A stretch of DNA of 64,000 nucleotides from Adineta vaga (taxonomy: Eukaryota; Animalia; Rotifera): the NCBI GenBank assembly GCA_021613535.1, contig CP075494.1, forward strand, positions 13,082,001 to 13,146,000. Reading direction: 5' to 3'. Shown here in pieces: positions 16,256 to 64,000 of this stretch (positions are counted from its first letter, which is position 1; each line of letters begins with the position of its first letter). A model generated the notes under the pieces. The model searched no databases and had not been told where the DNA came from. It was given only the letters and a program-made list of their open reading frames with translations. The position numbers and the translations under genes were made by a program.

Positions 16256-16349
16256 ATTTCTGGACTAATTTTTGGTTCCAGTTATCATTCTTTTGATAAA
16301 TAATATGCTTACTAAACTGATGTTATATTTCCTTTTAATTATTCTAGAA

Positions 16350-19588: not shown

Positions 19589-22169
19589 ATGGCAAATACA
19601 GTATCTTACGGTAAGAGATAAACAATATATGTGTATCATTGTATTCGTTTATTTGTATACTACAGATCCGGATGAACATTTATTTTCACCGTCCTTCGAT
19701 GCTGCTTATCGTGTTTTAAGTAAGTTTTTTTTTATTGAAACCAGTCAATATTGTTTATAATGATATATATTTTATTTAGGTGACACGAATTCACCCGATC
19801 TATTCGATCTAAGTTAGTATTTTACAATTTGTTATATCGAAATTCATTTCTTTCTGTTTAGGCAATAGTAATAGTCCGCCTTTCAGTGATCCATCTCAAA
19901 ATAGCAGTAATAGCTCACCACCTGAATCAAAATTATATTCACCAAGATCATTGGATACGTATCCGGAACCTAATTTTCTTGGAGATGGTATTGATGATTC
20001 TCTTCTTCGGGAACAAATCAATGAGAAACTACAAATTATTGCTCAACCCAAAGCGTTCTATCGTGAACGATACTGTAGTGAAACAGATCCAACTAAACAT
20101 CGAGCTCAACGTTTTATTCGTGCTGATGATGATACATGCAAATATGAATATCCAACTGTACAGGTAACAATCCGTTTTATTTATAGAATTTCATATTCTA
20201 TCTTAGTTTTTCTAAAGATTCCTACGAGATGGCGCAATTTAAATCGAAATTTATACATTCGAGTTACTTTAGTAACAGTTTTTTCTGAAAAAGTACCTGT
20301 TGTATGTATACATCCATATTCGATTGATACGCAAGAAGTTGGTGTTCTACGAAATGTACCGAATAATTCACTTTATTTTCCAATAACTCCTGAAGAAATT
20401 ATGCGTGGAGAAAAAAGGTATGAAATAAAATCCATCATCAAACTTACATTTCTACATCTTTCTGTTATTTTAGTTTTCGTATAAGTCGAAAGAAAATGAC
20501 TCAACATGATTTACGATCCTATGGACTTTTACGTTTATTCGATTTAAGTAAGAATATGAAAAATTTTCACGAAACAATATATTTCTCAATCGAAAACTTT
20601 TAGATCAACATGATATTCAACGTGTCTTAAACATTCATGATGCTAAACAAATTATTGAAACATATCAATTATGGAAATCACAACTTGTTTTTACTGTTGC
20701 TGAACGAAGCGCTAATGATCATTTTCCTTCTATAGTACCTATGACATCAGTAACATCTCAAATAATGTGCGATGAAGCTAGTTTACGACGAAGTGAGTTC
20801 GATTTAGTTTGTATTGAATTCCATTGGAATTTTATAACTTTTTTTTTTCTCAATTTTAGAAGATTCGTTGATGACGGAAACGTTACCTGTACCAGTAATC
20901 GATGAAGATACAGTTATATGTACACCGAGAAAAGGAAATTGGAATGGTGGTGATGAACTCTTATTGGTCATTCCTAAGCTTGATAGACGAAAAGGTAAGT
21001 GAAAGTTCGAATTTATCAACAAATATATATCTATTCATTTGTTTTGAATATTCTAGAATTTAATTTATATTTTGATTATGGTGCAATGGGACAATTAAAT
21101 AGTATTAGAGCATCATTTGTCGATATGAAAACAATTTTTTTTGAAACTCCTTCTTGTGCTGTATTGCCTGGTGAACAGAATCTTGCAGTACCTATCGTCG
21201 TTACACAGAATGATATGATTCTTGCAAGAGTTGAATTCGTTTATTTAGCACGTAAGTTAATTGAATTCATTGTAGAAAAGAAATCATCAATTTACTATTA
21301 CTTTTAGCGACTAAAACAAATTCAACTATATGTTCACGATGTCAACTTGATATCATGAATACAAATAATAATATTAATAATCAAACTAGTAATAAACGAA
21401 GATATTTACAATTAGAACCAATACAATTCGATGGAGGAGAAGAACTAGTTCGACAAATGAGTCTATTAACAACCAAAGAAGTAAATAAATCATATTTCAA
21501 TGATCTTAATTAATAATTATCTCTTTTAGAAACCTGTTCCATCGAACAAACAATCAAATAATGAAGGTAAAATCATATGATTTCAAAATATTTTCTCTTA
21601 TCTAATTTCTTTATTTTCTAGAATCAAATTCGAAATTTGATAAATATCTCAAACAATTACAAGAAGCTGTTGTTAGTTATGTTCGAACAAATAATCCATC
21701 AAAACTATTTCGTCGAACGCGTCTTCTCATTGCGAAATGGGAAGAAGATACACCACCTTTAGATGATGCTATTCGAAATGGACATATCGATCTTGCATTA
21801 AGACTTATCGAACAAACTGTTGATATGCCATCAGCATCGAATAATATACTTCAACGAGAAAATGATGATGGTCAAAATTCATTATTACTTGCTGCAAAAT
21901 TGAATCATTGGATTTTAATGGAACCAATTTTGAACAAACGTCCTGATCTTTTGGAAAAAACGGATAAATCTGGTAATAATATTTTACATCTACTTGCCAT
22001 GGTATCAGAAGATCGTGCTGTTGAAACAATTGAAAATATTTCCAAATTAATACCTGATGATCTGAAAGCAAAACTTTTAGATAAGAAAAATCAAGATAAA
22101 CAAACGCCTAAGCAAATTGCTCAAACGGAAAAAAATACTCAGTGTGCTTCTCTGCTTGTTACATCTTAA
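19589..22169 (+). CDS. Rel-homology gene A: RHD + IPT + NLS + ankyrin repeats (p105/Relish-like layout)
   Basis: LQIIAQPKAFYRERYCSE, YPTVQ, LYIRVTLVT, HPY; IPT TPRKGNWNGGDELLL...IFFETP...FVY; NKRR; ankyrins GQNSLLLAAK, GNNILHLLA, QTPKQIA. Confidence 0.85.
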
Positions 22170-22358
22170 TCATTTTGTTAGATATTTTTATCGCTTTACC
22201 CATGTTGGGTTTGTTTTTCAGTTTGTTTTTTACATATAATTAATAAAAAGTAATATTTATGCTTTATATGCAGGGAAACTCTTATGAATTATTTTACAAA
22301 AATACATAATTGAATGATGTTTGCTGTGTTAGGTACTTTTAGATTAATATATTAGAGA

Positions 22359-25170
22359 ATGTCTGAATTTACGTTTGATCCGGCAGATAGTATGGATATC
22401 AGAATCATATTTTTTTTTGCATTCCTTACTTGTCTTGTTTAGTCGATCTCTCTGATTGCGACGTTCCATCACCTCTTTTAAGTAAATGTTGTAAAAATAT
22501 ATACGATCATAATAATCATATACTTTACCTTTGAATAGGAGGGATACTTGACCAACCAAATTCAAATGAAGGTTTATAAATGTTCTTTCATTAAATAACA
22601 CTATTTCAATGTTTTCAGAAATTTTACTCACGTTTGATTCATTTACATCTTCTTCTAATACGAGTGAGTACTTGCGAATATATCCATTACTTGATTGTAT
22701 TATTCATCATAGATGATAGAAACTCTCTGGACTTTTCAAATGGATTCAATTCGAACTCCAATAATCAGGATATATTGACTGGTAGTTATATATATATATA
22801 TATATATATCTTGTGACCTAAACATATTCATTTAATATCTAATATTATTGCAGAAAATGCTGCTATGTTATCAGATATACAATATACTAATGATTGTATG
22901 AGTATCATTGCACAACCTACTTATACGTTCAGACTACGAACTCGTGATGAACATACAAAGGACAAACGTCATGATACTCTAACAGCAAAAGAACCCAATT
23001 CAAATTTTACAGGTCCAACAATCTGTGTAAATCATTTATTTTATTTTGACATTTTCTACTTCTTTACAAAATTTGCTTTTAGATTTTACCTAGTTATATG
23101 AATACGGACGAACAGTTTTATATCGGCATATTTCTTGTCACAGTGTTTCATAAAAATTCTCAGTGTCGTTATTTTCATCCATATGAACTCGATGATTTTG
23201 AAAGAACTATTCGTAATAGTGCAGACAATAGCCTTTGGTATCCAATTAATAAAGGAAGCTCTATAAATATTCAAAGGTATTGAATTTATTGAAGGTACTT
23301 TCTTTTTTTGTTGTTATATAGGATTCACAGCTTTCCAAATATCTGTATTTTAAAACAAACACAACAATATATTAAAACTAATGAAAATCTAAAACCATTT
23401 TATGGTTACAGTTAGTAAATAAATGTATAATGATAAAATTATTGTTTTCGCAATTCTATTAGCTCTGAATTCAAATTTATTCAGCTCCGCTGTTCCAAAA
23501 TCGATATCGGGAAGAAAATTAACTAAAGATTATGATCTTAAAAAAAGCCAGTTGGCATTTACAATTGGGAAGAAACGAGACTTAGAGAGTGAATTTCCTG
23601 TAATTCTTGATGATTGTATATTCGTCTATTCGGATGAAATGATAGAGATTAATGAAAAAGACAAACCTAAAAATAACAAAAATGTTGAATCAACTGCGGC
23701 ATCACAGCCACTACCTTCTATTCAACAAATCACCAGATATATTCCATCTTATGGCGATGCTGATGGCAATGAAAACATGGTTATCTTTTTACCAAAAGAA
23801 CGGAAAAAACTGAAATTAGCCGACTTACAAATCAGATTTGAATTCAATGAATATCCTTTTGCTAATCTCACTTCATATATAGTTGATAAAAGCACTGTTG
23901 AAATTGAAGATCAAGCGATACTTTTTAAAACACCGCCTTTTCCAGTCCGTATTTCAAGCCGTGTCGTTATCAAAATAATTGTGCAGAAGGGAAAAAAAAT
24001 CTTTGATCCAATAGATTATGAGTATCGATCAAAATGTAAAAGACGCGTCTCTTTTTTATATTTTTGTTACATATTTTGTTTTTAATTTAGATGAATACTC
24101 TTCAACTTCATCGACTAATCGAAATAAACGTTCAAAATATAGTCTTGTCGCACAATCCGATGACACTGATGCGGTGGTACCTATCGTTGGTACTAAACCT
24201 GTTTTGCAACAATGCAAATCAGAACCGGTTAGTTGTACTCATTCGTAATTTGACATATCATCACCTTATAATACTTGTAGGAATGTTATTCATCAAACGC
24301 ATGTGAGTAGTTCTAACTATGTCATTTAGCTTTTCTTTCTTGTCTTTTAACTCGTGATATGATTTTGTTCCAGCACCTCAATCATTAGTTAATAATGGTC
24401 GAACGAATATTAGTACTGACAAAATAATAGATAAACTTGAAGAGAGTGTCCGTTCATTGTTTATTGACAATGATTATACAATGTTTTTACGTCTTTGTCG
24501 ATCATTTATTCGCCAAAAACCTCACTTACTTCATCAAGCTATTGATAATAATCATTCAGATCTTCTAACAAAATTCATTCCTGGTACCAATCTTAATTTA
24601 TTCTATCCGAAAAATCATCTTGGTGAATCTGTTCTACTTCATGCTGTTCGTCTCAATCGTCTTAGTGTAGTGAAAGCTCTTCTGGAACGACAAAACTCGG
24701 ATAAACTCGTTAATGATGTTACAAATGATGGACAGAATATTTTACATATTGTAGCAAAGAACAAAGATTCGAAAGAAATGCTTGATGTATTAATTGATTA
24801 TTTTGACAAAGAAGCGATTGATATCAAAGGAAGGTTTGATAAAGTTGATAATAATGATAATACACCATTACAATTGGCGATTATCAACAATAATCTATCA
24901 GCTACACAAGTTTTGCTCAAATTTGCGAATAAAACTGTATGCAACAGAAATGGTGATGATCTCATCCAACTTGCTACTCGTTATGGTGATTCACAATTAT
25001 GTGAATGCTTATTAGTTGATGAAGATTTAAAAAAGCAAACAAATGAAACGAACTCAAAGTTACCGCCAATTGAATCCGCTCAACCAACAGAACGTGATGG
25101 GACAGTGGAACATCTGAATAAATTATATACGAAACTTGAAATTCGTACCGGTGAAAATTCCGATGAATGA
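22359..25170 (+). CDS. Rel-homology gene B: RHD + IPT + NLS-like + ankyrin repeats
   Basis: Consistent spliced frame from MSEFTFDPAD; SIIAQPTYTFRLRTRDE, GPTIC, IFLVT, HPYEL, SFPNICI, YDLKKSQLAF; IPT PSYGDADGNE...ILFKTPPF; ankyrins GESVLLHAVR, GQNILHIVA, NTPLQLAI. Confidence 0.82.
24484..24842 (+). repeat. 359-bp ankyrin-coding tract, copy 1 (copy 2 at 28858-29216)
   Basis: Direct comparison by eye shows 3 substitutions and no indels. Confidence 0.93.
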
Positions 25171-25609
25171 TTTAATCCATAACGTGTTTTCATTTCAGTT
25201 CTAAAATACTCTAATTCGACGGTACAAAACCTGAGCGATAGTGTTTATTTTCTTTTTGTCTAATCATTTCGTTTTCAGCCAAGAAACAATTTTTATAACT
25301 TATTTAATCTAGATACCTATTTTTTTCCTGTTTTTGCGATGTTAATCAATATTCTTGAAATATATACATTTTCTAAGCTAATAAAATCATTCAATGTAAT
25401 TCTCAATGAGGTGAAGAGGAAGATTTGCGCGTTATTCAAAGAGATGTTAATACAGTTGTAGGAGAAATGAACACTAACCATGCTTTTCGTTTTGTTGATT
25501 GAATTCGACTTTAATATAAATTTAGTTTGATGTAAATGAAACGAGCTTTTGTTCATTGGTATACGTGTGAAGGCAATGGAAGAAATGATTTCGATACAAT
25601 TCAAGAAGA

Positions 25610-26029
25610 TCATTTATTTGAAAAGAAGACAAATACAATAAATACAATACATACATAGAAGTTTGATTTCATAGATAATGCCGCATTTATATGCTGATTG
25701 TTACAAAAACGGGTAAAGCAACATGTAACGCTCATAAATGAAGTAGTATTTTGTAACATCTGCTGACATAATGTATTTTCTATCATCATCCATATCCATT
25801 TTTGTGTTTTTGATTCTTGTTCTTGTGTCGTACAGATTGTGTCGTTTATAGTACAAGTATATTTGTAACTTGTACATGCACATGTGTCATTACCACATTT
25901 TCCTCCCCATACACTACTATCTAATAGTATAATAGGAGTGTAAGAATTCGACATTCCATGATAACAAATGAGACTCGATGCGTAAACAATACTACATATC
26001 AACAATATAAGTTGAAAGATTTGATTCAT
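25610..26029 (-). CDS. Intronless Ly6/uPAR (three-finger)-like protein, probably GPI-anchored
   Basis: Signal peptide, mature start LICY, 10 Cys ending CCFTRFCN, hydrophobic C-terminal tail. Confidence 0.75.
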   Translation of the reverse strand: MNQIFQLILLICSIVYASSLICYHGMSNSYTPIILLDSSVWGGKCGNDTCACTSYKYTCTINDTICTTQEQESKTQKWIWMMIENTLCQQMLQNTTSFMSVTCCFTRFCNNQHINAALSMKSNFYVCIVFIVFVFFSNK

Positions 26030-26595
26030 TTCTGTCAGAACGAATATTGAAAGAAAATTACACGTATGATAAAAATCGATATACTGGGTTCATATATATA
26101 TATACATGTATATAATAAATAAAATGAAGGATTTGTTAAATCATCCTTGTGCGCTATTCTATTGCCATTTTAGTTCCTTCTATTCAGTATAATATACAAC
26201 CTCTCTTTTTTTGTATTCAGGTCGTCAATCAATCGCTACCTATGGCAACTGTGTACGAGTTAATTCATTGAAGAACAAGTAGTGAATAGAGAAAAAATGC
26301 GTAGCATTAGTATGACCTCTTATAATTGTGACATTTCAGAATGAAGGTTGCACATGGAAGAATTTGTGTCGAATTCAAAGCCTTCAATACTTATTGCTTC
26401 CATCTAACATAGAGTTTAGTTAAATAGTACATCTTTTACAAATACGAATCACTTTGCATTTTGAAAAATGAGAGTGCAAAAAAGGCAACATAGTGATATA
26501 TATATACTCCGAACTTTCAAAACAAAGAAAACTGAAAAAGATTTAAAAAATATATCAATAAGTCATACAATAACATAGCATTTGAAGTAGACTAT

Positions 26596-26607
26596 CATGA
26601 CGTCATG
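26596..26607. promoter_or_regulatory. Perfect CRE palindrome CATGACGTCATG between the divergent Ly6-like gene and RHD gene C
   Basis: TGACGTCA core within a 12-bp palindrome. Confidence 0.35.
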
Positions 26608-27144: not shown

Positions 27145-29256
27145 ATGAACTTAAATTATTCAGATCCATCAAATAGTATGTTCGAACTATCATAGATTAG
27201 AATATATTTACCTTGTTTTTCAGCGTCACTTTTAGGACAAACTCAGCTACAGACTGAATCATTGGAAATCATTGCACAACCATATTACACATCTAAACTA
27301 AGATATCGATCCGATTACAAAAGTAATCAAAATCGTCGTGGAGTTCTTCATAGTCAAAATAATCCCAATTATAAAAGTCCTGCTATTCGAGTATGTTTGT
27401 TATCTGTATTATCTGTATTCTACGATTGTTGTTTACTTCAGATTCCAAATGCCTATCTTCCTTTTGCTGAACAATATTTCATCCGTGTCTGTCTAGTAAC
27501 GATTGAAAATGAGAATACCAATTGTCGTTATATACATCCGTATGATCTTGAAGATGTTGAAAACAATCAATATAATGATCGACATAATAGAGTTATTTGG
27601 TATCCAGTTCTAGAAGAAGATGTTGGTGGAATTAAATGGTATGACAGAATATCTGTTTATATAGGTATATATATATATTCTTTCTTTGATTTAGTTTTCC
27701 AAATTTACGAGTAGTAAAGAAAAAAGCAGATGATTTAAAAAACTGTGGTGATTTACGAATATTCGATTCTTCAAGTAGGTTCTTGCTTTATATTTTTAAC
27801 GAAAAAAATATCAAAGAGTTATTTTCAGCTGAACAATCAACACCTCAATTATCGTCGGTAAAACTGACTATCAAAGAATACAATCTTGACAAAGCACAAA
27901 TAGCATTTACAGTTGGAAAGAAAATCAATGATAATGGTATCTTTTCAATGATTTTATTTTCTTCGACAACAGTTTTTTCCGATGAAATGAGTGAAAGTAC
28001 TGTTAGGGATGTCGATCCAGATAATGTTCCCACTGAATCAAATACTAATGAATCAGCTCATTGTAATATGTACAAATATACACCTCGAAGTGGTTATCAA
28101 AATGCCAACGATGAAGTACTTATTTTTTATACAACAAAACTAAAATTAAAAAAATACGGAGGTTAGACAATCTTACATATGTTTATTGATCAGTTAACTT
28201 GATTCTTCTTTGTAGATTTACAAGTAAAATTTGAATGTGAAAGACCAGATGGTTTATGGTCACAAACTGTTTCAGATCTCGAAGTGAAAGATCAAATGGT
28301 ATCATTTCGAACACCAACATTTGAATATCCTATTGATCAAATTACACCTGTCAACATTGTTTTACGTCAAAAAAGAAGAACGCTAGAATCACTTATATTC
28401 TATTATATCCCGATAGGTAAATTGAAATATAATTTTCTATTATTCTATTCGTTGTCATAACTATTTCACTTTAGATCAATGTTTAAATTGTCAAAGACGT
28501 ATTATCGAACAATCGAATACATTAGAAACAGCAACGAATGAAAATAAACGACGTAGATTGACATTATTTGACGATGATGAAACAACAGATAAAACCACTG
28601 TAATTCAAGAAGCACATTTAGAATCTGTAAGTCAAAATCTAGATAAAAGATGTAACCTACTATTTACTGTAGGAGCATCCATCATTTTCCAATACGGTAA
28701 TTCCATGTAAGTGTGTCGATGAATATGAATTTGATTCGAAATGTAATCTGTTTTTGTAGTTTCTATGCCACCATTTAATCATGATAAACCTCAAGTATTT
28801 TTGAATATGATTGCAGATAGTATAGAAAATCTATTTTCCAATAACGATTTAAAACCATTTTTACGTCTTTGTCGATCATTTATTCGCCAAAAACCTCACT
28901 TACTTCATCAAGCTATTGATAATAATCATTCAGATCTTCTAACAAAATTCATTCCTGGTACCAATCTTGATTTATTCTATCCGAAAAATCATCTTGGTGA
29001 ATCTGTTCTACTTCATGCTGTTCGTCTCAATCGTCTTGGTGTAGTGAAAGCTCTTTTGGAACGACAAAACTCGGATAAACTCGTTAATGATGTTACAAAT
29101 GATGGACAGAATATTTTACATATTGTAGCAAAGAACAAAGATTCGAAAGAAATGCTTGATGTATTAATTGATTATTTTGACAAAGAAGCGATTGATATCA
29201 AAGGAAGGTTTGATAATGATGATAATACATCATTTCAACTAGCATCTCTCAATTAA
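27145..29256 (+). CDS. Rel-homology gene C: RHD + IPT + NLS + truncated ankyrin tail
   Basis: LEIIAQPYYTSKLRYRSD, SPAIR, IRVCLVT, HPYDL, FPNLRVVKKK, YNLDKAQIAF; IPT TPRSGYQNANDEVLI...VSFRTPTF...FYYIP; NKRRR; ankyrin exon. Confidence 0.85.
28858..29216 (+). repeat. 359-bp ankyrin-coding tract, copy 2
   Basis: Near-identical to 24484-24842. Confidence 0.93.
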
Positions 29257-30126
29257 AATCTGCCTGCAACACGTAATCTGTCAAAATACTGTATTGATCG
29301 TATTCCTTTTGCAGTCAATTGTGTATGCGACAGTATTCTGTCTGTTGTTGTTTTTTTGTTCTTTCGTGTTGCAGTAAATTTTTTAACGCTTTTCTATATT
29401 GATGTATCAATGTGCCTATTTAAATAGTATTATTCGTTCTTGACGATTATAAATTTTTTTTTCTTTATTTAAAACGTATTTGAAAAATCTGCAGGCTGCT
29501 CTGACACACTAAACAAATATTTTCATGAAGTTCGTTCTTTTTCTATTGAAAAAGAGAACATTTTGACGAAAACAAGCTGGAAACTAATTGATTACACATA
29601 TATATATATGTATATAAACTATAATATCTTCCTACCGTTCATATTGTTTTGTTTTTTGTGACGAACGTTAGTTTACTATTTGTAATAAAAATCCATTCTA
29701 GATATGAGTTCGAACACTTAATTCAAAAAACATGCGGTGTAAGGGAAAATTACTATTAAGAATCTATTGATTTTATCGCTTTTCGTTACATGTCTGGAAG
29801 TGGGCTATTAAATATTTTCATGTGTAAGTAAACAGCTGTCAAAAATTTCATTTATCGATACCATTAGTAATAAGGTAAAAACCAACAGACTCTTCAAGCT
29901 ATCTCCGATAGGAAGAACGAAAGAAAAACAAAATGACGGCATGGTTTCTTTCCAATCAGTACATGTTGCAGCAAAATAGAATGTATATCGTTAATGTTAT
30001 GCTATTACATAGGACGATTCCCGGTATTTCTGGAATATATATGGACCTATTTTCTGATCGAGGATATTTCAGAACTTGAGTGGACATCTATACAACAATT
30101 CTATTAGTCAGATTTAGTTTCAATCT

Positions 30127-31412
30127 ATGGCACAAGCACCACAACCTTTGTGCATTCTTGCACAACCGAAAGCTGAATTACGCGAAAGATACTCTAGTGA
30201 AATGAGTAGGGAACGAAAGCGAGCTCATCGATACATTCGTACTGATCGAAAAGATGTTGACTATCCAACAATTGCAGTAAAACCTCTTTTTTTATTATGT
30301 TGCATTTTTTCTAAAATCTTCCTTCTTATATTAGATACCAGACATATGGAAAGGTCGGAACATATATATTCGTGTAACATTAGTAACCGTTCCATCTGAA
30401 CAAGCACCTATAAGATGCGTTCATCCTTATCCAATCCATACGACAGATTCAAATACGTTGAGAGATAAGGAAACGAATACAATTTATTTCTTAGTATCAA
30501 AGGAGGAATCCGACAAAGGTCAAAAAAGGTAAATTATCAATATGAACGATTAGTTGATAAAAAATTTTAATTTTCTTTTGTACTCTAGTTTTCGCATTAT
30601 TCGTGAAAAATTAGTTCATCATGATTTAAAAAATATTGAACGATTACGAATTGTAGATAGCAATGAGCTAGATATTCAACGTGTTGATGTATTAGGTGGT
30701 GCTCGAAAATTAATCGATACTTACCAATTAGTCAATTCGCAATTACTTTTTTCTGTCGCTGAAATGAGAAATAATCTACAAACAATTATATATCATGCAA
30801 CATCCGTTTATTCAAACGTAATGAGTCCTCCAACAAATGCAGGAAATGAAAACAATTCAATTGTTCGATATACACCGCAAAGCGGTTCTTGGATTGGTAA
30901 TGATACTATTATCATGGTTATACCAAAGTTAGATCGACGAAAACGTAACTAATTCAACTTTGTTCTTAGTTCAATTTCACTAGAAAATATACATTTGTTT
31001 TCTAGCATGCGAAGTCTATTTTGAATACTCGGATACAGAAAGAGATCCAGTTACATTGAAATATCTCGATGTGAAAACAATTGAATTTACAACTCCACCA
31101 TGTCGATTACCAAAAACTCACAATGAATGTGTATCTGTTCCAATTGTTGTTCGTCAAAATAAAAATACAATCGCATGTGTCAATTTTCTCTATCAAACAT
31201 GTAAATATTCTATTTATTTTATTTTTGGAATTATCTTCAATTTTATTTCATATTTAGCAGATAGATGTGTACAATGTGATAGACATGCAATATTTGATTC
31301 GTTTGAAAGATCGCGATTAGATGATCAACAATCTTCCATTTATGAAACGTCTTATGAAGAAAATGATATTTTTGAAGATTATGATGATATGTCTGATTAT
31401 CAGAAATGTTAA
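30127..31412 (+). CDS. Rel-homology gene D: RHD + IPT, short acidic tail, no ankyrins (start uncertain)
   Basis: LCILAQPKAELRERYSSE, YPTIA, IYIRVTLVT, HPY; IPT TPQSGSWIGND...IPKLDRRK...IEFTTPP...FLY; closest to gene A. Confidence 0.82.
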
Positions 31413-31829
31413 TTCAATATTGTCGAATATTTTCTTTCAGATGACACTGTTACATTTTTTTCTATTTTTTCAATAAAATCGAATACAAATATTCATAATT
31501 ACTCGCTCAATCATAGATATAAACGTCTCTCTATTTGAACAAATAGAAACACGAAATATTATTGATTCTACAATAGAATACATATTTGCCACTCTTGTTT
31601 TCGAAATAAATATGTTTTATCTGGGATATTTCACACGTATACATGTAATCAAAATAATTTGTGAGAAAAAAAAACACACTTTGGATGAAAAGAGGAAGAA
31701 CAATCTGCTTCATAAAATTGAGCAAAATACTTTTTTTTCGTTCTCATTATTTTAACCTTGAAATTGAGTATAAAACACTGTTTTGACAGAAAGGATAGAA
31801 AGGTGAAGTTAATAGTAAATTTTGAGTGA

Positions 31830-32392
31830 TGTCATAATACCATTACGCCGGGTATCCTTTTAAAATCCAGCGATGTATCTTTCCAGAAGCTGAGGAATAT
31901 GAGTGAATTTGGTCATTACCCAGCGGGTAACGAGAAGATGAATGCAGTGATTGTAGATAGATTGATATAAAACCATCTAAACGTGTCACTGTTACCAAAT
32001 ATATTTGATTAATTTTTCTATATTAATGAGTTTTCTCATGAATATCAACTACTATCAAAAGATTTTTTCCTGAATGAAAAAATAAGAAATACACCAAAGA
32101 ATGGTTGCATGTATTGAATCAATTACTGTCATAAAGTATTTGAAGAATATTATACGATCATTGGGTAAGGAGATGATCGAACCAAATTCACTCAAATTCC
32201 TTAGGTTCTGAAGGGATATAGTTTGGTCATCGGGTAACGAGATCATTAGACCAAATTCACTCAAATTCCTCAGGTTCTGAAGGATATAGTTTGGTTATCG
32301 GGTAGCGAGATTGTTTGGTCGTATGTATTTCGTTACCCTGTTGGGTATTTAGACGTTCAGCTCTGGATACCCAGTGTAATGACATTATGACA
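31830..32392. mobile_element. Non-autonomous MITE/foldback-like element
   Basis: 28-bp terminal inverted repeats (24/28 match, TGTCATAAT...GGGTATCC); ~69-bp tandem unit at ~32160-32310 with an inverted copy at ~31880-31915; no transposase, TSD unresolved. Confidence 0.75.
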
Positions 32393-33299
32393 GCTATGTA
32401 AATTTTCACTTTATTCGTCACATAATTTCATTTGTTTTGATCGATTATTCAAATTGATTTTAATGAAATAGTCACTAAATAATTTCTCTAATCAGTCGAT
32501 GGAATAAAAAAAGTCGAATTCAACTGTTGATGAAAGATAATATTTATTTATCTCGATGATATTTGAGGAGATTGTCATAAAATTCTAAACATTCATCGAT
32601 CAATAACAAGTTTAGTTTTTCTTTACTTAGTCGATAGATTGTCAATCTGTATACTCTCTCTATAGGATGTGTGTTATATGTACGATAAAAAATCATCAAA
32701 AAGGTGATTTCATCTTCTGTCTTTTATATATAGTTTGGATCTGAATGATGTTTTGATCAAAGTGGATAATGTTTGAAATATTGATGATTAGTGAAGTAAA
32801 AGCCGAATTTGTCGATAACTTCCAACAAATATTTGTAAACTTTCAGTATATATTGTCTGGTTTTTTCAAGATTAATTGATAAGTTCTTTACTACCGTAGA
32901 AGTATATACTCCGGGTGTCTGCTTACTCGATCAAATCTTGGGATCTTCCAACACTCTCTTTCCTTATTTCAGTATTTAATCAATGTCCACGTGTGCTCTA
33001 TTCGTCAATTCTTCGTAAAACATGCAACACAGATGCGTTGTTCTCAACTACAATTACTTGTTGCGTACGATGACGTTTTTTTTCCAAACGACTCGAAGAC
33101 ATCTATGTTTTTCTTTTGATCCTATAGGATTTTTGATTCTACCAATCGAATTTTTTTCTTGCTAGCAAAATGAAGCAAACTGCTACCAGGTGGGAAAAAA
33201 GGAATTTATTCTGATGACACACTCTTTTCTTCATACATTTTAAAACTACAGTGCAGTTGATTATATTTCATTCTTTCCGATAAATATTTTCAAACAAAA

Positions 33300-34897
33300 A
33301 TGGCATATCAACCACATGACAGTAGGCTAAAATGTGATATTATTTATTCTTTAATGCTATCAAATTAATTTCTAGTTTCACAATGTACTTTCAACGAAAG
33401 TGTATTCTATAATCTTGAGAGAGACTTGTCTACGACTGGTGGCTTTCAACATGCAAACGGTTCACTCGATGAAGATTCCCGAAAGAGTTTATTATGTTTT
33501 CAAAATGGTTTCCCAATTCCCAAAGATACGGTTGAATCAAAAAATACCATTGTTAACTCACCATCGGTATCAACAGACGCTGAATATCATCTTGATGAGC
33601 AATTATTTTCTGATAACGATTTCAGTATGGTCACACTCTATCTGAGTGATCGATTTTTATGCATATAGTATCCACTAATTTTGATCCTACTTTAGATGTG
33701 GTCCAAGAAGTTACTGTTACAACAACTCCTTCTGGTCTGTATAATAAACCTTTTTTTTCGGCGTGCCATAAAGTTTTAAAATTGGTTTTTCTAGATGCTG
33801 AACGGAACAACATGAACCCATCTAATGATATATTACTAGAATTCGACTACGGCGACTTGAATTTTTTCGTAATAAAGTTTAATATCTATATATAGTGCAA
33901 ACAAATGTTTTTTTTCTAGACACCTGAAGATGCGGAACTCTGTCAAACACTTTTAAATGAATATAGTTTACAAAATCTTGATGAATCTATTGAGGAACGG
34001 ACAATGTCTGTTGAAGTCGAACCACCAGCTATTCTTCGTTTGCGCTATAAAACCGATGGCCCAAGACAAATTGAAAAATCTCGCACGAATCCAATGATTC
34101 TTAAAGTAGGATAATTTCATATTCTTCATCATAACTAGTTTTCTTTTTCAGTTACCGAATTTAAAAGGCATTCACTTGAGTCCTGAACAAACATTTCTGA
34201 TTCGCTTAATTCTTACCACCTATAGTAATGATCCATTCGAACAAATATCTCTTCATTCGAACAAACTAGAATATCATTCGAATGATAAGGAAATATTGAG
34301 TGATGGAACTATTTGTGTTCCTATATCGGCAAAAGAAGTTGACGAAGGACGGAAAAAGTTAGAAACTATGCTTTGCAATAAAATTTCCGTAGTTCTAACT
34401 TTTATTTAGATTATCCCGTTTATCATTTATCAAAACAAAGCTCGGAGAATACAATCGTGAATTAACTCCACTCAATTTGTATAAAATTGATAACAGTATG
34501 TAGCATCTCTTTTTCATGCCAATGTAATACGAATATTTGATTATTAGATCAAGTTCTGCAAGATAAACTAGCAGTATCTGAAGCCAAGAAAATTTTCAAA
34601 ACATTGAAGCTGGAAGCGAGCCGAATTATTTGTCAATTGTTAATTAAACAAAATAAAACATATCATCTTACAAATATTATTTGTCTAACTAAGATGATGG
34701 AAGAAAGTGTGTTACTTTAAGAAATTTGATCTTCGAAGAATTTATGTTGGCTTTTTTCTTTAGAGAAACAAGCAACTGGAAAGAAAAAACGATCGATGAC
34801 AATAATGGAAAGTGATGATGAGGAAGAAGATGACGATGCCGATGAACGTCCAACTACATCAAAATCCATCAAACGCAAGAAAAGTTCTGATAATTAA
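33300..34897 (+). CDS. Rel-homology gene E: N-terminal extension + divergent RHD N-domain + basic/acidic tail, no IPT
   Basis: MSVEVEPPAILRLRYKTDG, NPMILK|LP, LIRLILTT, LHSNKL; intron positions shared with paralogs; KKKR and KRKK NLS-like motifs. Confidence 0.68.
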
Positions 34898-35590
34898 AAA
34901 TTCATCATGAACCTTTTCTTCTGTAAGACTTTTATTAATTTCAAAACAACAAAATCCGCTGAAGGGCCTTAACCGCTTATTTTACTCACGAAATTTTATT
35001 TCATTTTATTTCTCAAAGAAACTCGGTGATTGTATTTTATTTAACTATTGAATTTACTATTTTTTTTGTTGAATTTCATTTAATCCCGAAATAAAATTTC
35101 TATTTTACGACATTTCATAATTTCTTCACAAATATCGTAATGCAAAACATATGAAGCACTTCATTCCGTCTCATAGTTATCATTTATTTATTTATGCAAA
35201 ATACGTCGTAGTTGGGTTTTTGTGTGATTATAATGTAAGTTTAAGAGAAGATAAGAAAATCTGACAAAAACACAGTTTCTTTCTGTTTTTTTCAAATATT
35301 TTTAATGCAAAATATATTGCGTAGACATGTTATTGCAAAACTATAATTAGTTTCTCTCGTCTTTCGCCGATACCGACTTTTCATCGCCGTCTATTAGAAA
35401 AAAAAGCAACTATTTGCATTGTCTGTGTTGTTTTTTTTATCTGACGCATTAGAAAAGAACGAAAAAAAACGAGTTACCCAGGCAGGGTGAGATGTAAGTA
35501 GAAAAGACCGCTGATTGCTGTCTGACTTCTTATTCTTTTTAAAAATTTTCAACGACAACTCAAGTTATTTGTACGCCAAATACAAAAACA

Positions 35591-37136
35591 ATGGACAATC
35601 TCGACGTCATATTCAATGGCTTGTTTCCAGATGGAGTTCTTCCAAATCTTTTCGATGATATACCATTTAATCTAGGTGAGTGGGAAAAACATGAATTACT
35701 TTGTAAATTCGCATTATTTTTCAGATTCAATCACAGAAATCGATAATCTGGATGATCTGCTTCCCTTTCCACCATTCAATGAAGCGGAAAACACCGATAC
35801 CGAACTAAATTTCGGAATTACGACTACGGAACTAACTCAAATTCTAACAGGTTAGTAACTAAAACTCTTATTTCATAGCATTTATATACTCTTTTTATCG
35901 TAGAACGAGCAGAAACTGGTTTTGAGAATATTTTGAACGAACAATCGGAACAAGATCAGGCTGTGAATCAAGATTCAACGGTCATAAATACTCCCGTTGT
36001 ATTACAAGCATATGGAAGCGAAAATGGCATAATGTATCAAACACTTCCAGCTTTACTCGATTTCATCTTTGGTGATATGTCTGTTACCCAGCAACCCAAA
36101 GCAAACACTCGTTCACGTTATTCGTGTGATGGGCGTCGGTTTTTACCTGATTCACGTTACCATCCGATGACAGTTCAAGTTAGTTTATTTTTCTAATATT
36201 TACAAAACTCTTAAACGATTTGAAATATTTTAGCTACCAGATTTACGTTCAATTATCTTAGGACAAAATCAAACCTTAGGTATCGTGATGACGATCGTGA
36301 CAGGCACTAACAATCCAATCAATAAAACCATAGTGCACGTCAATGACATATCATGTAAAGAAAAGGGTGTTGAAAAAATTGGCTACGGCTGTATTTTCGT
36401 ACCATTGAGTCATTCTGAAGTTGATGCTTCAGAAAAAAAGTTAGTAAAATAATTAAGAAGAAACGACCTCTAAGTCATCTTTTGATTGTATAGATTTCCT
36501 CGCGCTTCGATTCTGTATAAAAAATATGAGGAATATACGTTCAATCTTACAACATTCGACACCAATACCATGTTTGAATCAATTGGAACATGTATGTAGT
36601 TTTCATATTTTTCCCAATTCATCTATAATAGTGTGTTCATTGAAATATAGATGCCGTTCCAAATCAATCAAATATGGATAACGTTCCAAAAGGAAAACGA
36701 TTTAAAACGGAATATAATCTATCAACATATAAATTCGTATTCCATCTTGGAATGAAACAAGACAATATAATTTATATCTCCAGTATTACATGTGAGACGA
36801 ATTTGATTGATGAAAGTAAGTTTCATCGTAATTGAAATAATAGATTTTATTTGTAAAGAGTATGTTTTTATTTTAGCAATAATACCAACAAAATCGAAGA
36901 AACGATCGGCATCAGTTTCAACAGAAATTCTCTCGGATGACGAAACTAGCTCTGATACACAAGTATCAAACTCAACTAAACGATTTAAATCATCACCATC
37001 ACCAATAATTGGACTACCCGTAAGTACATTCATGTGAAATCAAGTATTTATTCATTTCATAATATTCATTTAGGTAACGCGTATATCCAGCGATCATACT
37101 CAATTCAATCTGGATGATCATCATGCCCCATGCTGA
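35591..37136 (+). CDS. Rel-homology gene F: acidic N-terminus + RHD N-domain + NLS-like tail, no IPT
   Basis: MSVTQQPKANTRSRYSCDG, HPMTVQ|LP, IVMTIVT, FPRASILYKK, EYNLSTYKFVF, KSKKR. Confidence 0.75.
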
Positions 37137-37893
37137 AGGGGCTCATCCGCCATATTTATTTATACTTATATAACTAAATTTATTCAATATAAAGTTTTTC
37201 AATGATCATCTAATGACATGATTAAATCATAAATGTTGTATTGTGTTTTTTTGTGTGATTTGATTACATTTTTTCGTGAGAATTATTACGAAATAAACTT
37301 TCATCATGAAATACTTGTTCCGATTTTGTTGTCCTCATCTTTTTCATATGATTTTCTTTTCGACCGTATGGCTTTTGTTCGAAATACGTTCGTGGTTCTT
37401 TTACATCCTTTATCTACGTTTTTTTCTCTTCTGTTGTTATGTTAAATGACACATATGAAGGCAAGAAATGACGTTGGTAATATGACAGAATGGTAAAAAT
37501 AAAAATAAAAATAGACACTTGAATTTCGTAAGTTGGAAAATACCAATCATTACTAAAAATATGATCAATATAAAATGTTGTCTGGAAAGAAAGTAATTAT
37601 ATAACTGTATGTGAATGTTGTTCTTGTCATGTGCATAATGAAACTTAATTTATCAGTGATTTTTCGTCGACTTATTATTTCTTTTTCAATGTAAATTTTA
37701 TGTTTATGACATATCGTTTTATTCATAATGTATAGATTACTTATTTTCGTAAACATCGTATTTGTGAATATACTTTCGTACGTTCCGTACAGATTGTATT
37801 AGACATTCGTGCTTGAAATTTTCTTTCTACAATATAATTTTGAAAATATATAATTTAAGATTTCGAATGAATTAAGCGAAGTACAGTTTGAAA

Positions 37894-39751
37894 ATGTCTT
37901 CTGATCAATCAGTGTTAAACGATCTCAACAATTTTATATATACTGGTATATATAATACATTTATTGTTGAATTGATATATTTATCATTATTATCATCAAT
38001 TCATTTAGATATTCTTTCAACTGAATCGCTTGTTGAATTTAGTAAACGACTTAAACATATCAATACATTTCTCATCAAAATTGCTTTACAAATTTAGATT
38101 CACTACCGTCGTCTGGCCATTCTTCTTCGTTGGAAACTTACAATAACAATTCTTTTCTTGGTACACTTGGATTTTTGAAATATCGTGAATCTTAATTGCA
38201 CTTCTTTAGATTTTATTTTACCGCCACTCAACAGTCTAACTGAGGATCTTCCAGAAATCGATGAAATACCATTGCATCCATCGTTGTCATATTCTCATCT
38301 TTCTAACGGCGGAACGTATCAATATTTAACAGATGGTTCTCAAGTTTCTCCTCCTATCAAACAAAGTAATACAACATTTCGTATGTTTGTACTTATAATT
38401 GATCTGTATCCAATAGATTCAATTAATGATGATGATGAACAATCTGCAATGATTGGATCAAATACGGATTCATTACCTATTAGTCGACCGTTTTCAGAAA
38501 AATGTATACAACAAATTTATACTTATCGATGTTTTCAAAATGGTTTTATCTTCATCTTTAGTATCCAATTCATCGATTCCACTTTCATCACATGTTCATA
38601 TAACTGATTCTAGTTCTAAAAAACTACAACTTGTTAATCTAATCGAAGAAACCTATCGTGCACGTTATAAGAGTGATTATTTTCCTCAAAATGGAACAGT
38701 TCGATATCCACGTTACATTGCTGATAGAAAACATAATCATTATATAACATTACAAGTAAGAATTCATTCGTAAAAACGAACTTTTCCTATTTATTTAGTT
38801 GCCAAGTGTATATCATTATGATTTAGCAAATAAATACATTCGTATCGCATTAATAACAATATCTATCGATGGTCATAATCATTATTACAGTCCATATAAA
38901 TTTCAAAAAGATCATACGGATCCGAAAATACCTGATGAAAATCCGATTTATATTAAAATAGATACTAATAAAGAACAAACATTTTTGATTAGGTTAATAA
39001 TTTTTTTTATGTACGAACGAAGAATAATTTGACTTCAATCCTAGATTACAGCTTGTTTTAATCAAATCGAAATTAGATCAACTTAATAATGTTCAACCTT
39101 TAAAACGTTTCTCCGATAGTTCGATTCCTATACGAAGTAATATTTTCATAGATAAGATTTTGTAATCAAAATCTTCATATAAAATTTAGATATTGTTCCC
39201 GAAATAATCGTATCACCTAAAGAATTGATCCATAAATATCAACTTGATAAATCTCATCTAGCTTTTACAATATGTACAAAACAGTCCAATGGTACTTACA
39301 AACCTGATCCAGATACTACAGTGATTTCAACAGTTATTAGTGAAGTATCACTAACGAAAAAAACAAATGGTAAATTTATTTTCAATAAATTAACTTTAAG
39401 AAAATTCTCTTTCTAGAAACTCCTGTTACAACTGTATCAAAATTGGGTAAATGATCCTCTTTACTCGTTGACAGTATTATTCAGAACATTGTGCTTTTAT
39501 TTTGAGTTGATTCGGATCATCATCAATGTTGTCCACATTGTTCACATCTATTTCATCCAGATACAACTTCTGAAATAGATGACAATAACAAATGTCAGTC
39601 AAATCTTACAACATCATGTTCCACTGACGAAGTAATCAGTGATTATATATGATTAATTGAAAAAAAAAACTTATTCAAATATTTGTAGACAACAACAACA
39701 ACAACAACAACTACCAAGACAAAAACTAATAAACGAAAGAAGATGAAATAA
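37894..39751 (+). CDS. Rel-homology gene G: Ser/acidic N-terminus + RHD N-domain + CPHC + terminal NLS, no IPT
   Basis: LQLVNLIEETYRARYKSDY, YIRIALIT, SPYKF, KYQLDKSHLAFTIC, TTVISTVISE, terminal NKRKKMK. Confidence 0.72.
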
Positions 39752-40723
39752 CGGCGAATACAACAAACTAATGAAAAAGACTTTTTGATACGTAAGCACT
39801 CTACTCGTACTGAGAGTTACATTTCTCCTGTATTGAATCGTTTATGTATTTCATAATAATATAAAGAAGTTGATGTAGAGATTCTCCGGCTACTTATCTT
39901 TTAATATTGAATTCATAGAAAATTTGGATTGAAATACATGCCAACAAGTTTGTTTGACTAATTCACTTCAAATAATTACAAATATTGTCTGAATTTTATA
40001 TTTTCATCTCACTAAAAGGTGTATGTCTAGAAATCAATGTGTATAGTCAGTCAACCGATACGTCTACATTCGAAACAGACGTTCTCGTTCCCAAATAATT
40101 CTCATATGTTAGAAAATAAGCAATCGTATGTTTTGATTTCGTAGTTATGTTTTTATCAATGATGTCATGAATACGAATCATTTATATTATTTGTTTTTTT
40201 GTCTTTATCGATCACGTGGAGTCAGGGGAAAAAACAATATTTACTTTGTATTTGTTTACTACACAAATGTATAAAACAACGAATAGCAACCATAACAACA
40301 AAGTCTCGTCTATAAAAAATGTGACTTGATGATTTCGTATGTTAAAAGGAATAAATAAATTTTTGTTTATGCTACGCGTGACTAATGCTAGAAACCAGTC
40401 ATTAATATAACTTCAGTCGGTCTTTTCTTTCTCTGTTCTGTTCTTTTTTACTTTTTTTCTTCTTCCGTGTATAGAGAGTACTTGGAAAAAACCCATCATT
40501 GTAGATTTTTTCGAATATAAAAAGAGAAATTAGATCATATTCTAAGCATAAATATTAAAAAATAGAGCTAAAGTAAGAAATCAAACATGACTCATAGAAT
40601 TCTTTTTGGAAAATTTCTTCCTTTCCGTAGAACATTTTTTGTGAAATGTAATTTCATTGCTTGAGCATCTCAAGTAAATCTAATACCAGCTGCAGTGATA
40701 ACAAAAAAGCAAACCAAATAACG

Positions 40724-42297
40724 ATGAGCATGGCTTTTCTTTTCAATGGTACGTCAGCCGAGGGTTTATCTGTTGAAGTCAATAGCGATGGATATCCATT
40801 GAACGATTTTGTGAATAATTCAGTACCCGATTATGGATGGGAAGCATTGTTCGGGAATGAAAATTGGGGCGAAATTGATGTTTCTGGTACATGTGATGGA
40901 GATCTTCTATTAGACAGCATCGTCGGAAGCTGTGATCAAAATGCATTATTCAGTACAGAATCAGTTAATACATGTAATGAGCTCGACGAATTCCAAAAAT
41001 ATTTTTTATTTCCATCACAGGAATCAAGTAGGAAAATATTGTTATGAAAATTTGTTTCAGTATTATTAATATTCAGATTCGTCATCGGAAATCGATCAGA
41101 ATTTGGTCACTGTTTCGCCTGCACCAGTTGAATCTATTGGTAATTGATTATACATTTATATTCATCAGGAAATGATATATAATCTTATTGAAATAGGGAA
41201 GAGTAGCAAGAAAAATAAAAATAAAAAACCGATCCCATTATCATCGTCTGTGGCTGTTGGTGTACCTCAAAGAATCATTCCAGTATCTCATGAGATAAAA
41301 TTGGTCTTTGATTTGGAAGCAAAATATCGACCACGATATAAAAGTGATTATTTTACTAACAGTGGTTCAATTAGAAAACCACGGTATGTGGCCGATCGTT
41401 CTGGTAATCATTACATCTCAGTGAAAGTAATAGGCTCTTATAGAACTAATTATATTAATCTATCTCATCTATGTATACTCTAGGTACCTATCGATATTCA
41501 AGGCCAAATTCGAATCGATTGGGTGACTATACCAGATGAATATGATACTCGTTATGTTATGCCTTATCGATTTCAAGCAAGCAATAATTCATCGGAAATA
41601 TCTGATTGTAATCCAATTTTTGAAACAATCAACTGTGACAGTATGGGAATAATGAAGTAAATATAAATAACAATCTCATATTCGATCATTTATTTAATTG
41701 ATACGTTTTGCTAGAATTTATTTAGTGTTGATCAAAGCAAAACAAGATGCTCTGAAATCGCTTCAACCACTTCAATCATTCCATCCGATAAAAGATGCTT
41801 TTGGCGTCATCGATAAAGACACTACTGAAAAACAAACGAGATTAACACCCAAACAATTGATACAAAAATATCAACTCGGCAAATCTCAATTAGCTTTCAC
41901 ATTATGTCGCGTAGGTGTGGATGGTTACACCTGCCATCCAGAATGGGACACTACTGTTTATTCGACAGTTTTGGAAGGTAATATATCATAATTTGAAGAT
42001 TTAATAAGAATTTTCGATTTCGGCCAATAGAGGAAGTAACTGACAGTCAACCCGTGAAAACAGTATCTTGCCCAAACTGCAAACACAGCATTCCTCTCAA
42101 TGATGATGCTATCAGATGTCCAGAGACACCAAAAACCAAACGAAAAATACCAGAAAGCAAAGCACAACAGCCAACAAAAATAAAAGTATAGATTCGTCTT
42201 TTTTCCATGGTGAATATTTATTTTGAATGATCATTTTTTTTAATTTTAGAAACAAAGATCATTGCCATATGAAATCCTTCCTCTAATTTTTCAATAA
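40724..42297 (+). CDS. Rel-homology gene H: acidic N-terminus + RHD N-domain + CPNC + basic tail, no IPT
   Basis: IKLVFDLEAKYRPRYKSDY, IRIDWVT, MPYRF, KYQLGKSQLAFTLC, TTVYSTVLE; clear paralog of G. Confidence 0.72.

Positions 42298-62902: not shown

Positions 62903-64000
<1,098 letters not shown>

Follow-up and report, generated by a model that had tools for sequence, protein, structure and literature searches.

Eight paralogous genes (A to H) that lie in one orientation on the chromosome-scale contig C5 of the bdelloid rotifer Adineta vaga very probably form a tandem cluster of highly divergent Rel-homology transcription factors of the NF-kB/Rel class. The cluster occupies 19.8-42.2 kb of the window, which is the whole stretch of 64,000 nucleotides analyzed here. 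NF-kB is a central switch of innate immunity and stress signalling in animals, and bdelloids serve as models both of long-term asexuality and of extreme tolerance to desiccation and radiation. Animals studied so far are known to have one to five NF-kB-type genes plus NFAT; the family described here comprises at least 24 loci in each haploid A. vaga genome. In the literature searched on NF-kB, Relish and Rel homology in rotifers, bdelloids or Adineta, no account of this bdelloid family was found. According to the first-pass annotation, divergence and fragmentation put the genes beyond routine annotation. This holds only in part: Pfam misses the N-terminal DNA-binding domain (N-domain) of the Rel-homology domain (RHD), but B, D and G are already present in GenBank as "hypothetical protein" with correct gene models, and some paralogues in other bdelloids have been named automatically in UniProt as "Relish" or "RHD domain-containing protein." The features of the cluster are collected in Table 1.

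Table 1. Genes of the cluster and the gene-conversion tract, in window positions.
Feature	Position	Strand	Content	Evidence
Gene A	19813..22169 (mapped exons only; N-terminal part upstream excluded)	+	RHD N-domain from ~19993, IPT ~20900-21256, degenerate ANK 21627-22169	tblastn with A. steineri orthologue P0003, intact across all three regions; Ank_2 E 1.2e-3; stop ends at 22169
Gene B (UJR23122.1, I4U23_026143, 730 aa)	22359..25170	+	RHD N-domain, IPT ~23729-24028, ANK 24373-25170	P0001 against exons 99-100%; RHD_dimer E 4.4e-4; Ank_2 E 1e-16
Gene-conversion tract, ANK exon of B	24484..24853	+	98.6% DNA identity to 28858-29227 of gene C	blastn
Gene C	27196..29256 (mapped exons only; upstream excluded)	+	RHD N-domain, IPT, shorter ANK	Ank_2 E 1.9e-12; stop at 29256
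Gene D (UJR23124.1, I4U23_026145, 349 aa)	30127..31412	+	RHD N-domain and IPT, without ANK	P0002
Gene E	33300..35115	+	Disordered N-terminus, RHD N-domain, basic/acidic tail; CDS stop 34897, poly(A) 35115	Spliced contigs from three studies, poly(A) loose end; exon-wise translation
Gene F	35457..37230	+	Disordered N-terminus, RHD N-domain, basic tail; CDS stop 37136	Spliced contigs; translation
Gene G (I4U23_026149, isoforms of 362 aa and 422 aa)	37859..39700 (3' end approximate)	+	Disordered N-terminus, RHD N-domain; in the long isoform an extra CxxC-H motif and basic tail	Spliced contigs; P0004, P0127
Gene H	40661..42191	+	Disordered N-terminus, RHD N-domain, C-terminal CPxC motif, basic tail	tblastn with H-type proteins P0085 and P0089; stop codon at 42191

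Gene Structure and Architecture

It had been noticed from the DNA alone that eight co-oriented genes share a phase-0 intron at the same codon. Indeed, GT directly follows an in-frame codon at all eight donors; the introns are 43-58 nt long, and the following exon begins with IP, LP or VP. A search of the window with a profile of exon 2 returned exactly eight matches and no others. A second intron of phase 2, which is not among the common features listed in the first-pass annotation, is also shared by A to H and lies about 65 codons downstream of the first. Spliced, polyadenylated contigs from three studies are available for E, F and G, the three genes covered by the transcription evidence, and each of them is transcribed. 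The introns predicted in E (34106-34151), F (36179-36233) and G (38756-38798) are exactly those found in the contigs, and the splice junctions of the GenBank proteins of B, D and G are identical to the predicted ones. The RNA also fixes the stop codons of E and F, confirming their short architecture.

The proposed relation between architecture and position was borne out: A to C have the RHD, the IPT domain and ankyrin repeats (ANK), D has the RHD and IPT, and E to H have only the N-domain plus a basic tail. Reading this gradient as stepwise loss would give it a direction that it may have had. The sub-pairs A/D, B/C, E/F and G/H were recovered by blastp and in the tree as four clades with 99-100% support. 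The dimerization domain (IPT/TIG, PF16179) was identified in A to D by Pfam, profile and fold, and is absent from E to H; ankyrin repeats are absent from D to H, and the weak ones of A are homologous to those of ANK-positive orthologues. A basic cluster directly follows the IPT in A, B and C. The N-termini are short or disordered and have no family match, and no NFAT regulatory region was found in them. In these searches, spliced models were treated exon by exon, and the full-length proteins used were database records.

Relationship to NF-kB, Rel and NFAT

The Rel-homology reading of the cluster is carried by predicted folds of D and G and by profile comparisons. The AlphaFold model of D has a pLDDT of 85, and its top 40 Foldseek matches are all NF-kB, Rel or NFAT proteins, the first 39 with E-values from 3e-14 to 1e-10, against 3.6e-6 for the first non-RHD match. 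It matches p65, p50, p52, c-Rel, RelB, NFAT and TonEBP across both domains. The model of G (pLDDT 79) likewise has only RHD proteins among its top 44 matches (best E 2e-6). The cores of both models superpose on RHD folds. With RHD N-domains G reaches Z-scores of 13.3-11.1 over 148-174 residues, compared with 7.9 for velvet and 6.3 for p53, and on this gap (13 vs. at most 8) another Ig-like fold was rejected. The DNA-binding domains of velvet, p53, STAT and MRF, which are the next-best structures (Z 6-8), belong to the same broad s-type Ig fold class; they have no sequence signal to the family and are not candidates.

In profile searches of the PDB, a profile of A to D matched c-Rel over the whole RHD (E 4.1e-10) and the dimerization domains of RelB, p52 and p65 (1e-5 to 3e-4), and all 19 matches below E 0.01 are Rel/NF-kB proteins. 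The exon-1 profile gave two matches in all, the recognition loops of NFAT5 and NFATc1, and the exon-2 profile gave only noise. Full-length profiles of E/F and G/H had no direct RHD match in the PDB, so that their link to the RHD is transitive, through hhalign to the A-D profile (E 1.3e-15 for E/F and 6.5e-29 for G/H) and the one predicted fold of G. E/F is placed in the family by its hhalign score together with an Atlas lead. No exon in the window matched Pfam RHD_DNA_bind (PF00554), and among full-length family members none reached the cut-off of 27; the best scored 22.4 bits (P0063), followed by 13.8 bits for P0045, the A. ricciae orthologue of F, with a weak match (E 0.059) at the correct position. 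These sub-threshold matches fall at the right place; the failure of Pfam is read as a limit of model sensitivity. For RHD_dimer (PF16179), the exon of B scored 20.7 bits; the homologue P0048, with 31.7 bits, exceeded the cut-off of 28.3. When the entire genome was searched in six frames with PF00554 and PF16179, nothing was returned, but this blank is uninformative, because the same exon of B was missed as well and the controls were silent.

The stretch best conserved across all sub-families is the recognition loop close to the beginning of the domain, R-x-R-Y-x-x-[ED], which aligns to RFRYKCE of c-Rel and to the loops of NFAT5 and NFATc1. The final residue is D, replacing E, in C and in E to H, and the most canonical loop of the cluster is that of F (RSRYSCDGRR). 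The core motifs that had been described as common to all eight genes are in fact shared unevenly. The loop is present in seven, B having T for Y; HPY is restricted to A to D (HSN in E, HVN in F, SPY in G and MPY in H); and YxLxxSQLxF, although degenerate in E and F, is clear in the other six genes.

Sequence comparison supports placing the family in the NF-kB/Rel class and not with NFAT. The family has the RHD fold and the R-x-x-Y-x-x-E-type loop in common with NFAT1-4 and NFAT5/TonEBP, and descent from NFAT/TonEBP could be argued from the short exon-1 profile, whose only PDB matches are NFAT proteins, and from the NFAT structures among the strong fold matches. Nevertheless, the longer A-D profile did not come closer to NFAT (c-Rel 4e-10 vs. 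NFAT5 0.26), identity in the structural alignments of D is 20-22% to p65 and c-Rel vs. 13-16% to NFAT, and C-terminal ankyrin repeats are characteristic of NF-kB p100/p105/Relish, which together make such a descent very improbable. E to H also differ from all NFATs in lacking the IPT.

Within the NF-kB/Rel class, A to C resemble the class I proteins NF-kB p100/p105 and Drosophila Relish in their order of RHD, IPT and C-terminal ANK; the A-D profile matches the p52/p100 dimerization domain, and NF-kB folds match D. The bdelloid proteins differ from these in an N-domain that escapes Pfam RHD_DNA_bind, and neither a glycine-rich processing region nor a death domain was observed in them; many members carry a CxxC motif after the IPT. 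By eye, the linker of B contains no glycine-rich region and no known degron. ANK-bearing copies number three to four per cluster, compared with one or two per genome for p100/p105/Relish. Gene D is like the class II proteins Rel/Dorsal/c-Rel/p65 in having the RHD and IPT without ankyrin repeats; c-Rel is the best sequence match of the A-D profile, and the folds that match D best are those of p65 and c-Rel. In contrast to p65 and c-Rel, D has only 349 aa and a short acidic tail instead of a long activation domain. The IPT of D was predicted to form a symmetric homodimer, with a score of 0.65 vs. 0.04 for the best of three controls, at least 70% of contacts agreeing between runs and a partner pLDDT of 86, a supportive result that may nevertheless come from recall of NF-kB dimers already solved. 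Of the proteins solved as one-chain pairs, 21 of 30 reached the mark used for such dimers, which D passed, against none of 23 solved as single chains; among eukaryotic proteins the counts were 17 of 29 (animals, 7 of 16) and none of 30, and only one of seven without an older solved relative reached it.

Distribution, Age and Constraint

The cluster exists in two collinear copies, on C5 and on C2, that are older than the bdelloid genome duplication; the sister cluster on C2 has ten genes. In A. ricciae, gene order is the same as in the A. vaga cluster, which answers the proposal to look for synteny in a related genome; on this ground an assembly artefact was rejected. The A. ricciae orthologue of C is 91% identical in exon 1 and 74% in exon 2. 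All four clades of the tree include members from Rotaria and Didymodactylos. In homology searches, including a protein search with the A-D profile, every named match was bdelloid. These observations agree with the earlier description of the cluster as lineage-specific and old.

Neutral evolution of most copies had been considered as a possible outcome. C to H are constrained in comparison with A. ricciae (pN/pS 0.06-0.44, dS saturated), and pseudogenes were rejected on the RNA and pN/pS evidence. The E/F and G/H sub-families have been under constraint since before the split of Adineta and Rotaria. Evolution is nevertheless fast, with dN of 0.04-0.38 from A. ricciae, and the highest pN/pS is that of E (0.28-0.40), in which five of six differences from a close relative are non-synonymous. 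In B and C, the ANK tract has been homogenized independently in A. ricciae too.

Possible Functions of the Family

DNA binding, dimerization, nuclear import and signal-dependent processing are putative activities, proposed here from the domains. A to D may bind DNA as dimers held by the IPT. In A to C, the ankyrin part would act as it does in p105 and Relish, inhibiting the protein until it is removed in response to a signal, and D would be a Rel-like partner without an inhibitor. Having an acidic disordered N-terminus, an RHD N-domain and a nuclear localization signal (NLS), E to H may be nuclear DNA binders that act as monomers or depend on a partner, and they may add to, or compete with, the dimeric factors. 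A precedent is provided by NFAT, in which a monomeric RHD can bind DNA together with a partner. No canonical kB motif (GGGRNWYYCC) occurs in the window, which says little because the specificity of these proteins may differ. The stress or immune role of the cluster that was suggested from the start is likewise putative.

It is also conceivable, though we consider it doubtful, that E to H are not activators but decoys, lone N-domains that damp the output of A-D dimers by sitting on kB-like half-sites or by titrating cofactors. They lack the IPT, which canonical members need for dimeric high-affinity binding, and yet keep the loop, and they are transcribed from the same cluster as A to D. On the other hand, their long acidic disordered N-termini resemble activation domains and are accompanied by NLS-like tails; the ancient constraint on both sub-families is compatible with either role. 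A function of the whole family outside transcription, in which the RHD fold and ANK serve protein binding, for example in cytoplasmic sensors or adaptors of a rotifer-specific defence, is improbable. Fast evolution and the many clustered copies, as often seen in immune receptors, would suit it; the DNA-contacting loop is nevertheless the best conserved part in all sub-families, the tails are basic and NLS-like, and the nearest structures are all DNA-bound transcription factors. Least credible is the view that E to H are transcribed but functionless remnants of tandem duplication in decay. They are indeed shorter and more divergent than A to D, and the differences of E from its close relative are mostly non-synonymous, but the reading frames are open and correctly spliced, with pN of 0.10-0.30 from A. 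ricciae at saturated dS, and orthologues in A. ricciae, A. steineri, Rotaria and Didymodactylos share this short architecture, with ohnologues on C2.

Bdelloids are without canonical Toll-like receptors (PMC6043800, PMC8609888), and a study of bdelloids challenged with a pathogen left metazoan immune genes unexplored (PMC11258130). Setting these alternatives aside, a broader account of the bdelloid family can be offered tentatively. A single-copy metazoan NF-kB gene may have given rise to a large, positionally ordered bdelloid cluster, collinear in two copies since before the genome duplication, in which E/F and G/H would be ancient classes of stand-alone RHD N-domains without a counterpart in other animals, binding DNA without the IPT (G/H perhaps via the CxxC-H tail). 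With the ANK members they might form a combinatorial regulator of responses to pathogens or desiccation in an animal without Toll-like receptors, and recurrent gene conversion would keep the ANK of B and C identical. If so, this sub-domain would be identical because both proteins answer to the same upstream regulator.

With at least 24 loci and two collinear clusters, the family is largely invisible to Pfam and supplies candidate regulators of the responses to desiccation, radiation and pathogens. Existing bdelloid RNA-seq sets can be re-read with this gene list straight away. The short members may also represent a natural experiment, in which an RHD factor works without its dimerization domain.

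Fold and class of the N-domain

Genes A-H share an N-terminal DNA-binding domain of the Rel homology domain (RHD), here the N-domain, which Pfam does not recognise exon by exon or in full-length family members. Four other lines of evidence do, two of them predicted structures. A model of gene D, built on an alignment of 61 family proteins, has a mean pLDDT of 85 (>90 in the cores). In a Foldseek search of the PDB, its first 40 matches are NF-kB p65, p50, p52, c-Rel, RelB, NFAT or TonEBP; the first 39 have E values of 3e-14 to 1e-10 over 310-345 columns, which cover both domains, and the first other protein is EBF1 (E 3.6e-6). For gene G (long isoform, residues 140-422) the model reaches a pLDDT of 95 across the domain, and the first 44 Foldseek matches are RHD proteins (44/44). 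VIA-align gives Z 13.3-11.1 against RHD structures (148-174 aligned residues, 3.4-4.7 A), with residues 8-208 of the model spanning p65 residues 19-190; the next folds are velvet (Z 7.9), then p53 and STAT (6.3). Thus, the predicted cores of D and G superpose on RHD folds, as the Rel-homology reading of the first-pass annotation supposed.

Profile comparisons at the sequence level agree with this. A profile built from 18 A-D-type proteins over their RHD matches chicken c-Rel end to end at E 4.1e-10, while NFAT5 is reached only at E 0.26. Its 19 matches at E <0.01 all come from Rel/NF-kB proteins; for RelB, p52/p100 and p65 the match is to the dimerisation domain, at E 1e-5 to 3e-4. The exon-1 profile (43 columns, eight window genes) has two PDB matches at E <=10, the recognition loops of NFAT5 and NFATc1. 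The short genes E-H are tied to A-D over the whole N-domain by profile-profile comparison (E/F, 98.6% probability, E 1.3e-15, 182 columns; G/H, 99.8%, E 6.5e-29, 210 columns). Weaker support comes from RHD_dimer, above the Pfam cut-off in a Didymodactylos homologue, and from RHD_DNA_bind, sub-threshold at the right position in two other homologues. As a lead only, the ten nearest named ESM-Atlas clusters of the E orthologue are all RHD (top score 0.89). Its ankyrin (ANK)-bearing architecture, together with its closer match to c-Rel, RelB and p52, places the family in the NF-kB/Rel class rather than with NFAT, which narrows the earlier NF-kB/NFAT-family label.

Gene models, transcripts and architecture

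By exact look-up, gene B is GenBank UJR23122.1 (I4U23_026143), D is UJR23124.1 (I4U23_026145) and G is present as two isoforms, UJR23129.1 and UJR23128.1 (I4U23_026149), each an Adineta vaga 'hypothetical protein'. The exon-2 profile matches exactly eight places in the window, the number of copies first proposed. The donors described as shared by these genes have GT after an in-frame codon at 8/8 positions; the introns that start there are 43-58 nt long, and the downstream exon starts with IP, LP or VP. The genes (8/8) also share a phase-2 intron, some 65 codons downstream. The exon after it has an 'SF-x-N/I...KK' stretch, which the profile alignment pairs with 'SFQNLGIQCVKKKDL' of c-Rel. The sub-pairs A/D, B/C, E/F and G/H were recovered by blastp of stop-to-stop segments; the short motifs listed with them are universal across the eight genes only in part.

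Contigs from four public runs (three studies of the same organism, one of a close relative) were aligned to 33420-39419. They skip the shared introns and all other introns of E, F and G exactly, always at GT..AG, and one has a poly(A) end at 35115. These are therefore spliced transcripts of E, F and G.

The domain architecture follows gene position as the first-pass annotation had it. Gene A has an intact N-domain, dimerisation domain (IPT) and degenerate ankyrin region. B has all three parts with a strong ANK, and C has all three with an ANK region that ends early, at a stop at 29256. D (349 aa) terminates after the IPT. E and F, with exons defined by RNA, stop soon after the N-domain; their tails are basic/acidic (KKKRS...KRKK; KSKKRS...KRFK). 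A basic tail preceded by a CxxC(-H) motif closes H and the long isoform of G. Each of E-H has 100-160 acidic, low-complexity residues at its N-terminus.

G+C is about 30% throughout the window, and the features around the array are collected in the table. Where the cysteine-rich ORF lies, A. ricciae carries an unrelated gene model of 370 aa on the minus strand. The D-E spacer (31500-33300) is 1.9 kb long, and 0.85 kb in A. ricciae.

Elements within and around the array, and related loci elsewhere in the genome
Feature	Position	Strand	Remarks
Cysteinyl-tRNA synthetase fragment	3211-3912	+	
FAD-linked oxidase gene, tandem duplicate	15345-19194		directly before gene A; 18944-19144 matches FAD-oxidase_C (E 6e-19)
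Cysteine-rich ORF, 139 aa, hydrophobic N-terminus	25610-26029	-	between B and C; no Pfam match
CxxC + basic element	39416-39700 (G), 42030-42191 (H), 31300-31412 (D)	+	alignment end
Short, internally repeated ORF fragments	32055-32421	-	D-E spacer; possibly mobile-element remains
ORF directly after H	42585-42758	-	position of NHL-repeat gene in A. ricciae; no Pfam match
Rhodopsin-type GPCR gene	46938-47867	-	
C2+C1 protein resembling novel PKC	49389-50006	+	
HSP70 tandem gene pair	59405-64000	-	stretches of 100% DNA identity between copies; another locally homogenised pair
C2 cluster	C2:4,300,440-4,330,200		ten co-oriented genes; exon-1 + exon-2 profiles
Single loci	C1, C3, C6		six or seven; exon-1 + exon-2 profiles

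Age, constraint and gene conversion

The genome searched comprises 100.8 Mb in six contigs, with the window at C5:13082001-13146000. The exon-2 profile matches 29 places in it, which the exon-1 and exon-2 profiles together resolve into the eight window genes, the cluster on contig C2 and the single loci, a family of at least 24 loci. By best-hit relations the C2 cluster is collinear with that of the window: ANK-bearing A/B/C/D-like genes are followed by E/F-like ones, and these by G/H-like ones. The array therefore predates the duplication that made the two chromosomes. A 184-kb contig of A. ricciae preserves the gene order of the window (B, an unrelated gene on the minus strand, C, D, E, F, G+H) and ends the series with an NHL-repeat gene on the minus strand. 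Its G+H is one fused model of 791 aa (L012:14569-18665), and a protein of Rotaria magnacalcarata (P0010, 770 aa) fuses an F-type with a G-type gene. Both fusions are probably annotation errors, and the Rotaria one shows that F-G adjacency is conserved in that genus.

Searched with a profile, 1.84 billion representative proteins yielded 126 matches. The sources looked up are bdelloid in every case except one unnamed ENA record, and comprise Adineta vaga, A. ricciae, A. steineri, five Rotaria species and Didymodactylos carnosus. In a tree of 51 N-domains (root for drawing only; rows <130 residues and the fused P0010 omitted), E/F, B/C, G/H and A/D form four clades at 99-100% support. Each of the E, F, G and H sub-clades contains both Adineta and Rotaria, and Didymodactylos is placed inside the G/H clade. 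Thus, the N-domain-only forms are old rather than recently truncated. Together with the collinear C2 cluster, the order kept in A. ricciae and the bdelloid sources, this supports the initial description of the array as old and lineage-specific.

In exons 1 and 2 of C-H, comparison with the A. ricciae orthologues gives pS 0.51-0.79 (saturated) and pN 0.04-0.30, hence pN/pS 0.06-0.44, with E the fastest. C-H thus evolve under constraint, and the three copies covered by RNA contigs, E, F and G, are transcribed. The close relative among the RNA runs is about 95-97% identical to the window, and its differences are mostly amino-acid changes (34192-34444, 38241-38420). In the disordered N-terminus of G, 9/12 differences change an amino acid; in E exons 2-3, 5/6 are protein-changing, a sample too small to interpret. 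Selection on E and G may be relaxed or diversifying on short time scales.

Within the ANK repeats, B 24484-24853 and C 28858-29227 are 98.6% identical over 370 bp (repeats 1-3), and the RHD parts of the two genes share only about 30% protein identity. In A. ricciae the same tract is 96.9% identical over 425 bp (L012:780-1204 vs L012:6524-6948), whereas between the two species it is only about 66% identical. This pattern shows that gene conversion limited to the ANK sub-domain recurred in both lineages, a concerted evolution of one sub-domain. C departs from B directly after the converted tract (29227-29331), and its ANK is shorter by some two repeats. Beyond the C stop codon a weak similarity to B persists, apparently the remnant of a longer ANK domain.

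Direction of change and proposed mode of action

The literature searched yielded no paper linking NF-kB, Relish or the Rel homology domain to bdelloids or Adineta. A. vaga is without canonical Toll-like receptors, and rotifer immune pathways had not been reported (reviews; PMC6043800, PMC8609888); a study of fungal challenge did not analyse metazoan genes (PMC11258130). UniProt auto-names a few bdelloid paralogues 'Relish' or 'RHD domain-containing protein', and the existence of bdelloid RHD genes is therefore already on record. As far as checked, the record lacks the size of the family, its pair of collinear clusters, and the two classes with an N-domain only and their expression.

In many A-D-type proteins the IPT is followed by a CxxC-plus-basic stretch similar to the CxxC-plus-basic tail of G and H, and this likeness suggests that G/H arose through internal IPT loss. 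An E/F-type protein of A. steineri (P0122) retains a C-terminal IPT-like stretch with CxxC. With both features considered, loss would be the favoured direction of change. The CxxC element itself (CCPHCSHLFH in G, CPNCKH in H) stands directly after the N-domain, and may be a small family-specific metal-binding or redox element.

Beyond the domain content, the predicted fold, the transcription of E, F and G and the constraint on C-H, the mechanism is drawn by analogy with established NF-kB. A-D would bind DNA as IPT-mediated dimers. In the prediction runs for the D IPT, at least 70% of contacts agree and the partner has a pLDDT of 86. The mark for a dimer was reached by 21/30 solved one-chain pairs and 0/23 solved single chains; the eukaryotic figures are 17/29, but only 1/7 without an older solved relative, so that the pass of the D IPT (homodimer 0.65 vs 0.04 for the best of 3 controls) may echo memory of solved NF-kB dimers. 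In A-C, an NLS-like basic cluster after the IPT (in B, NRNKRSK) would stay masked by the ANK part until removal of that part, and D would act like a Rel protein. For E-H, the main rival explanation is that they serve as decoys. In the reading proposed here, E-H, which combine an acidic N-terminus with the recognition loop and a basic tail but have no IPT, would be monomeric or partner-dependent DNA binders.
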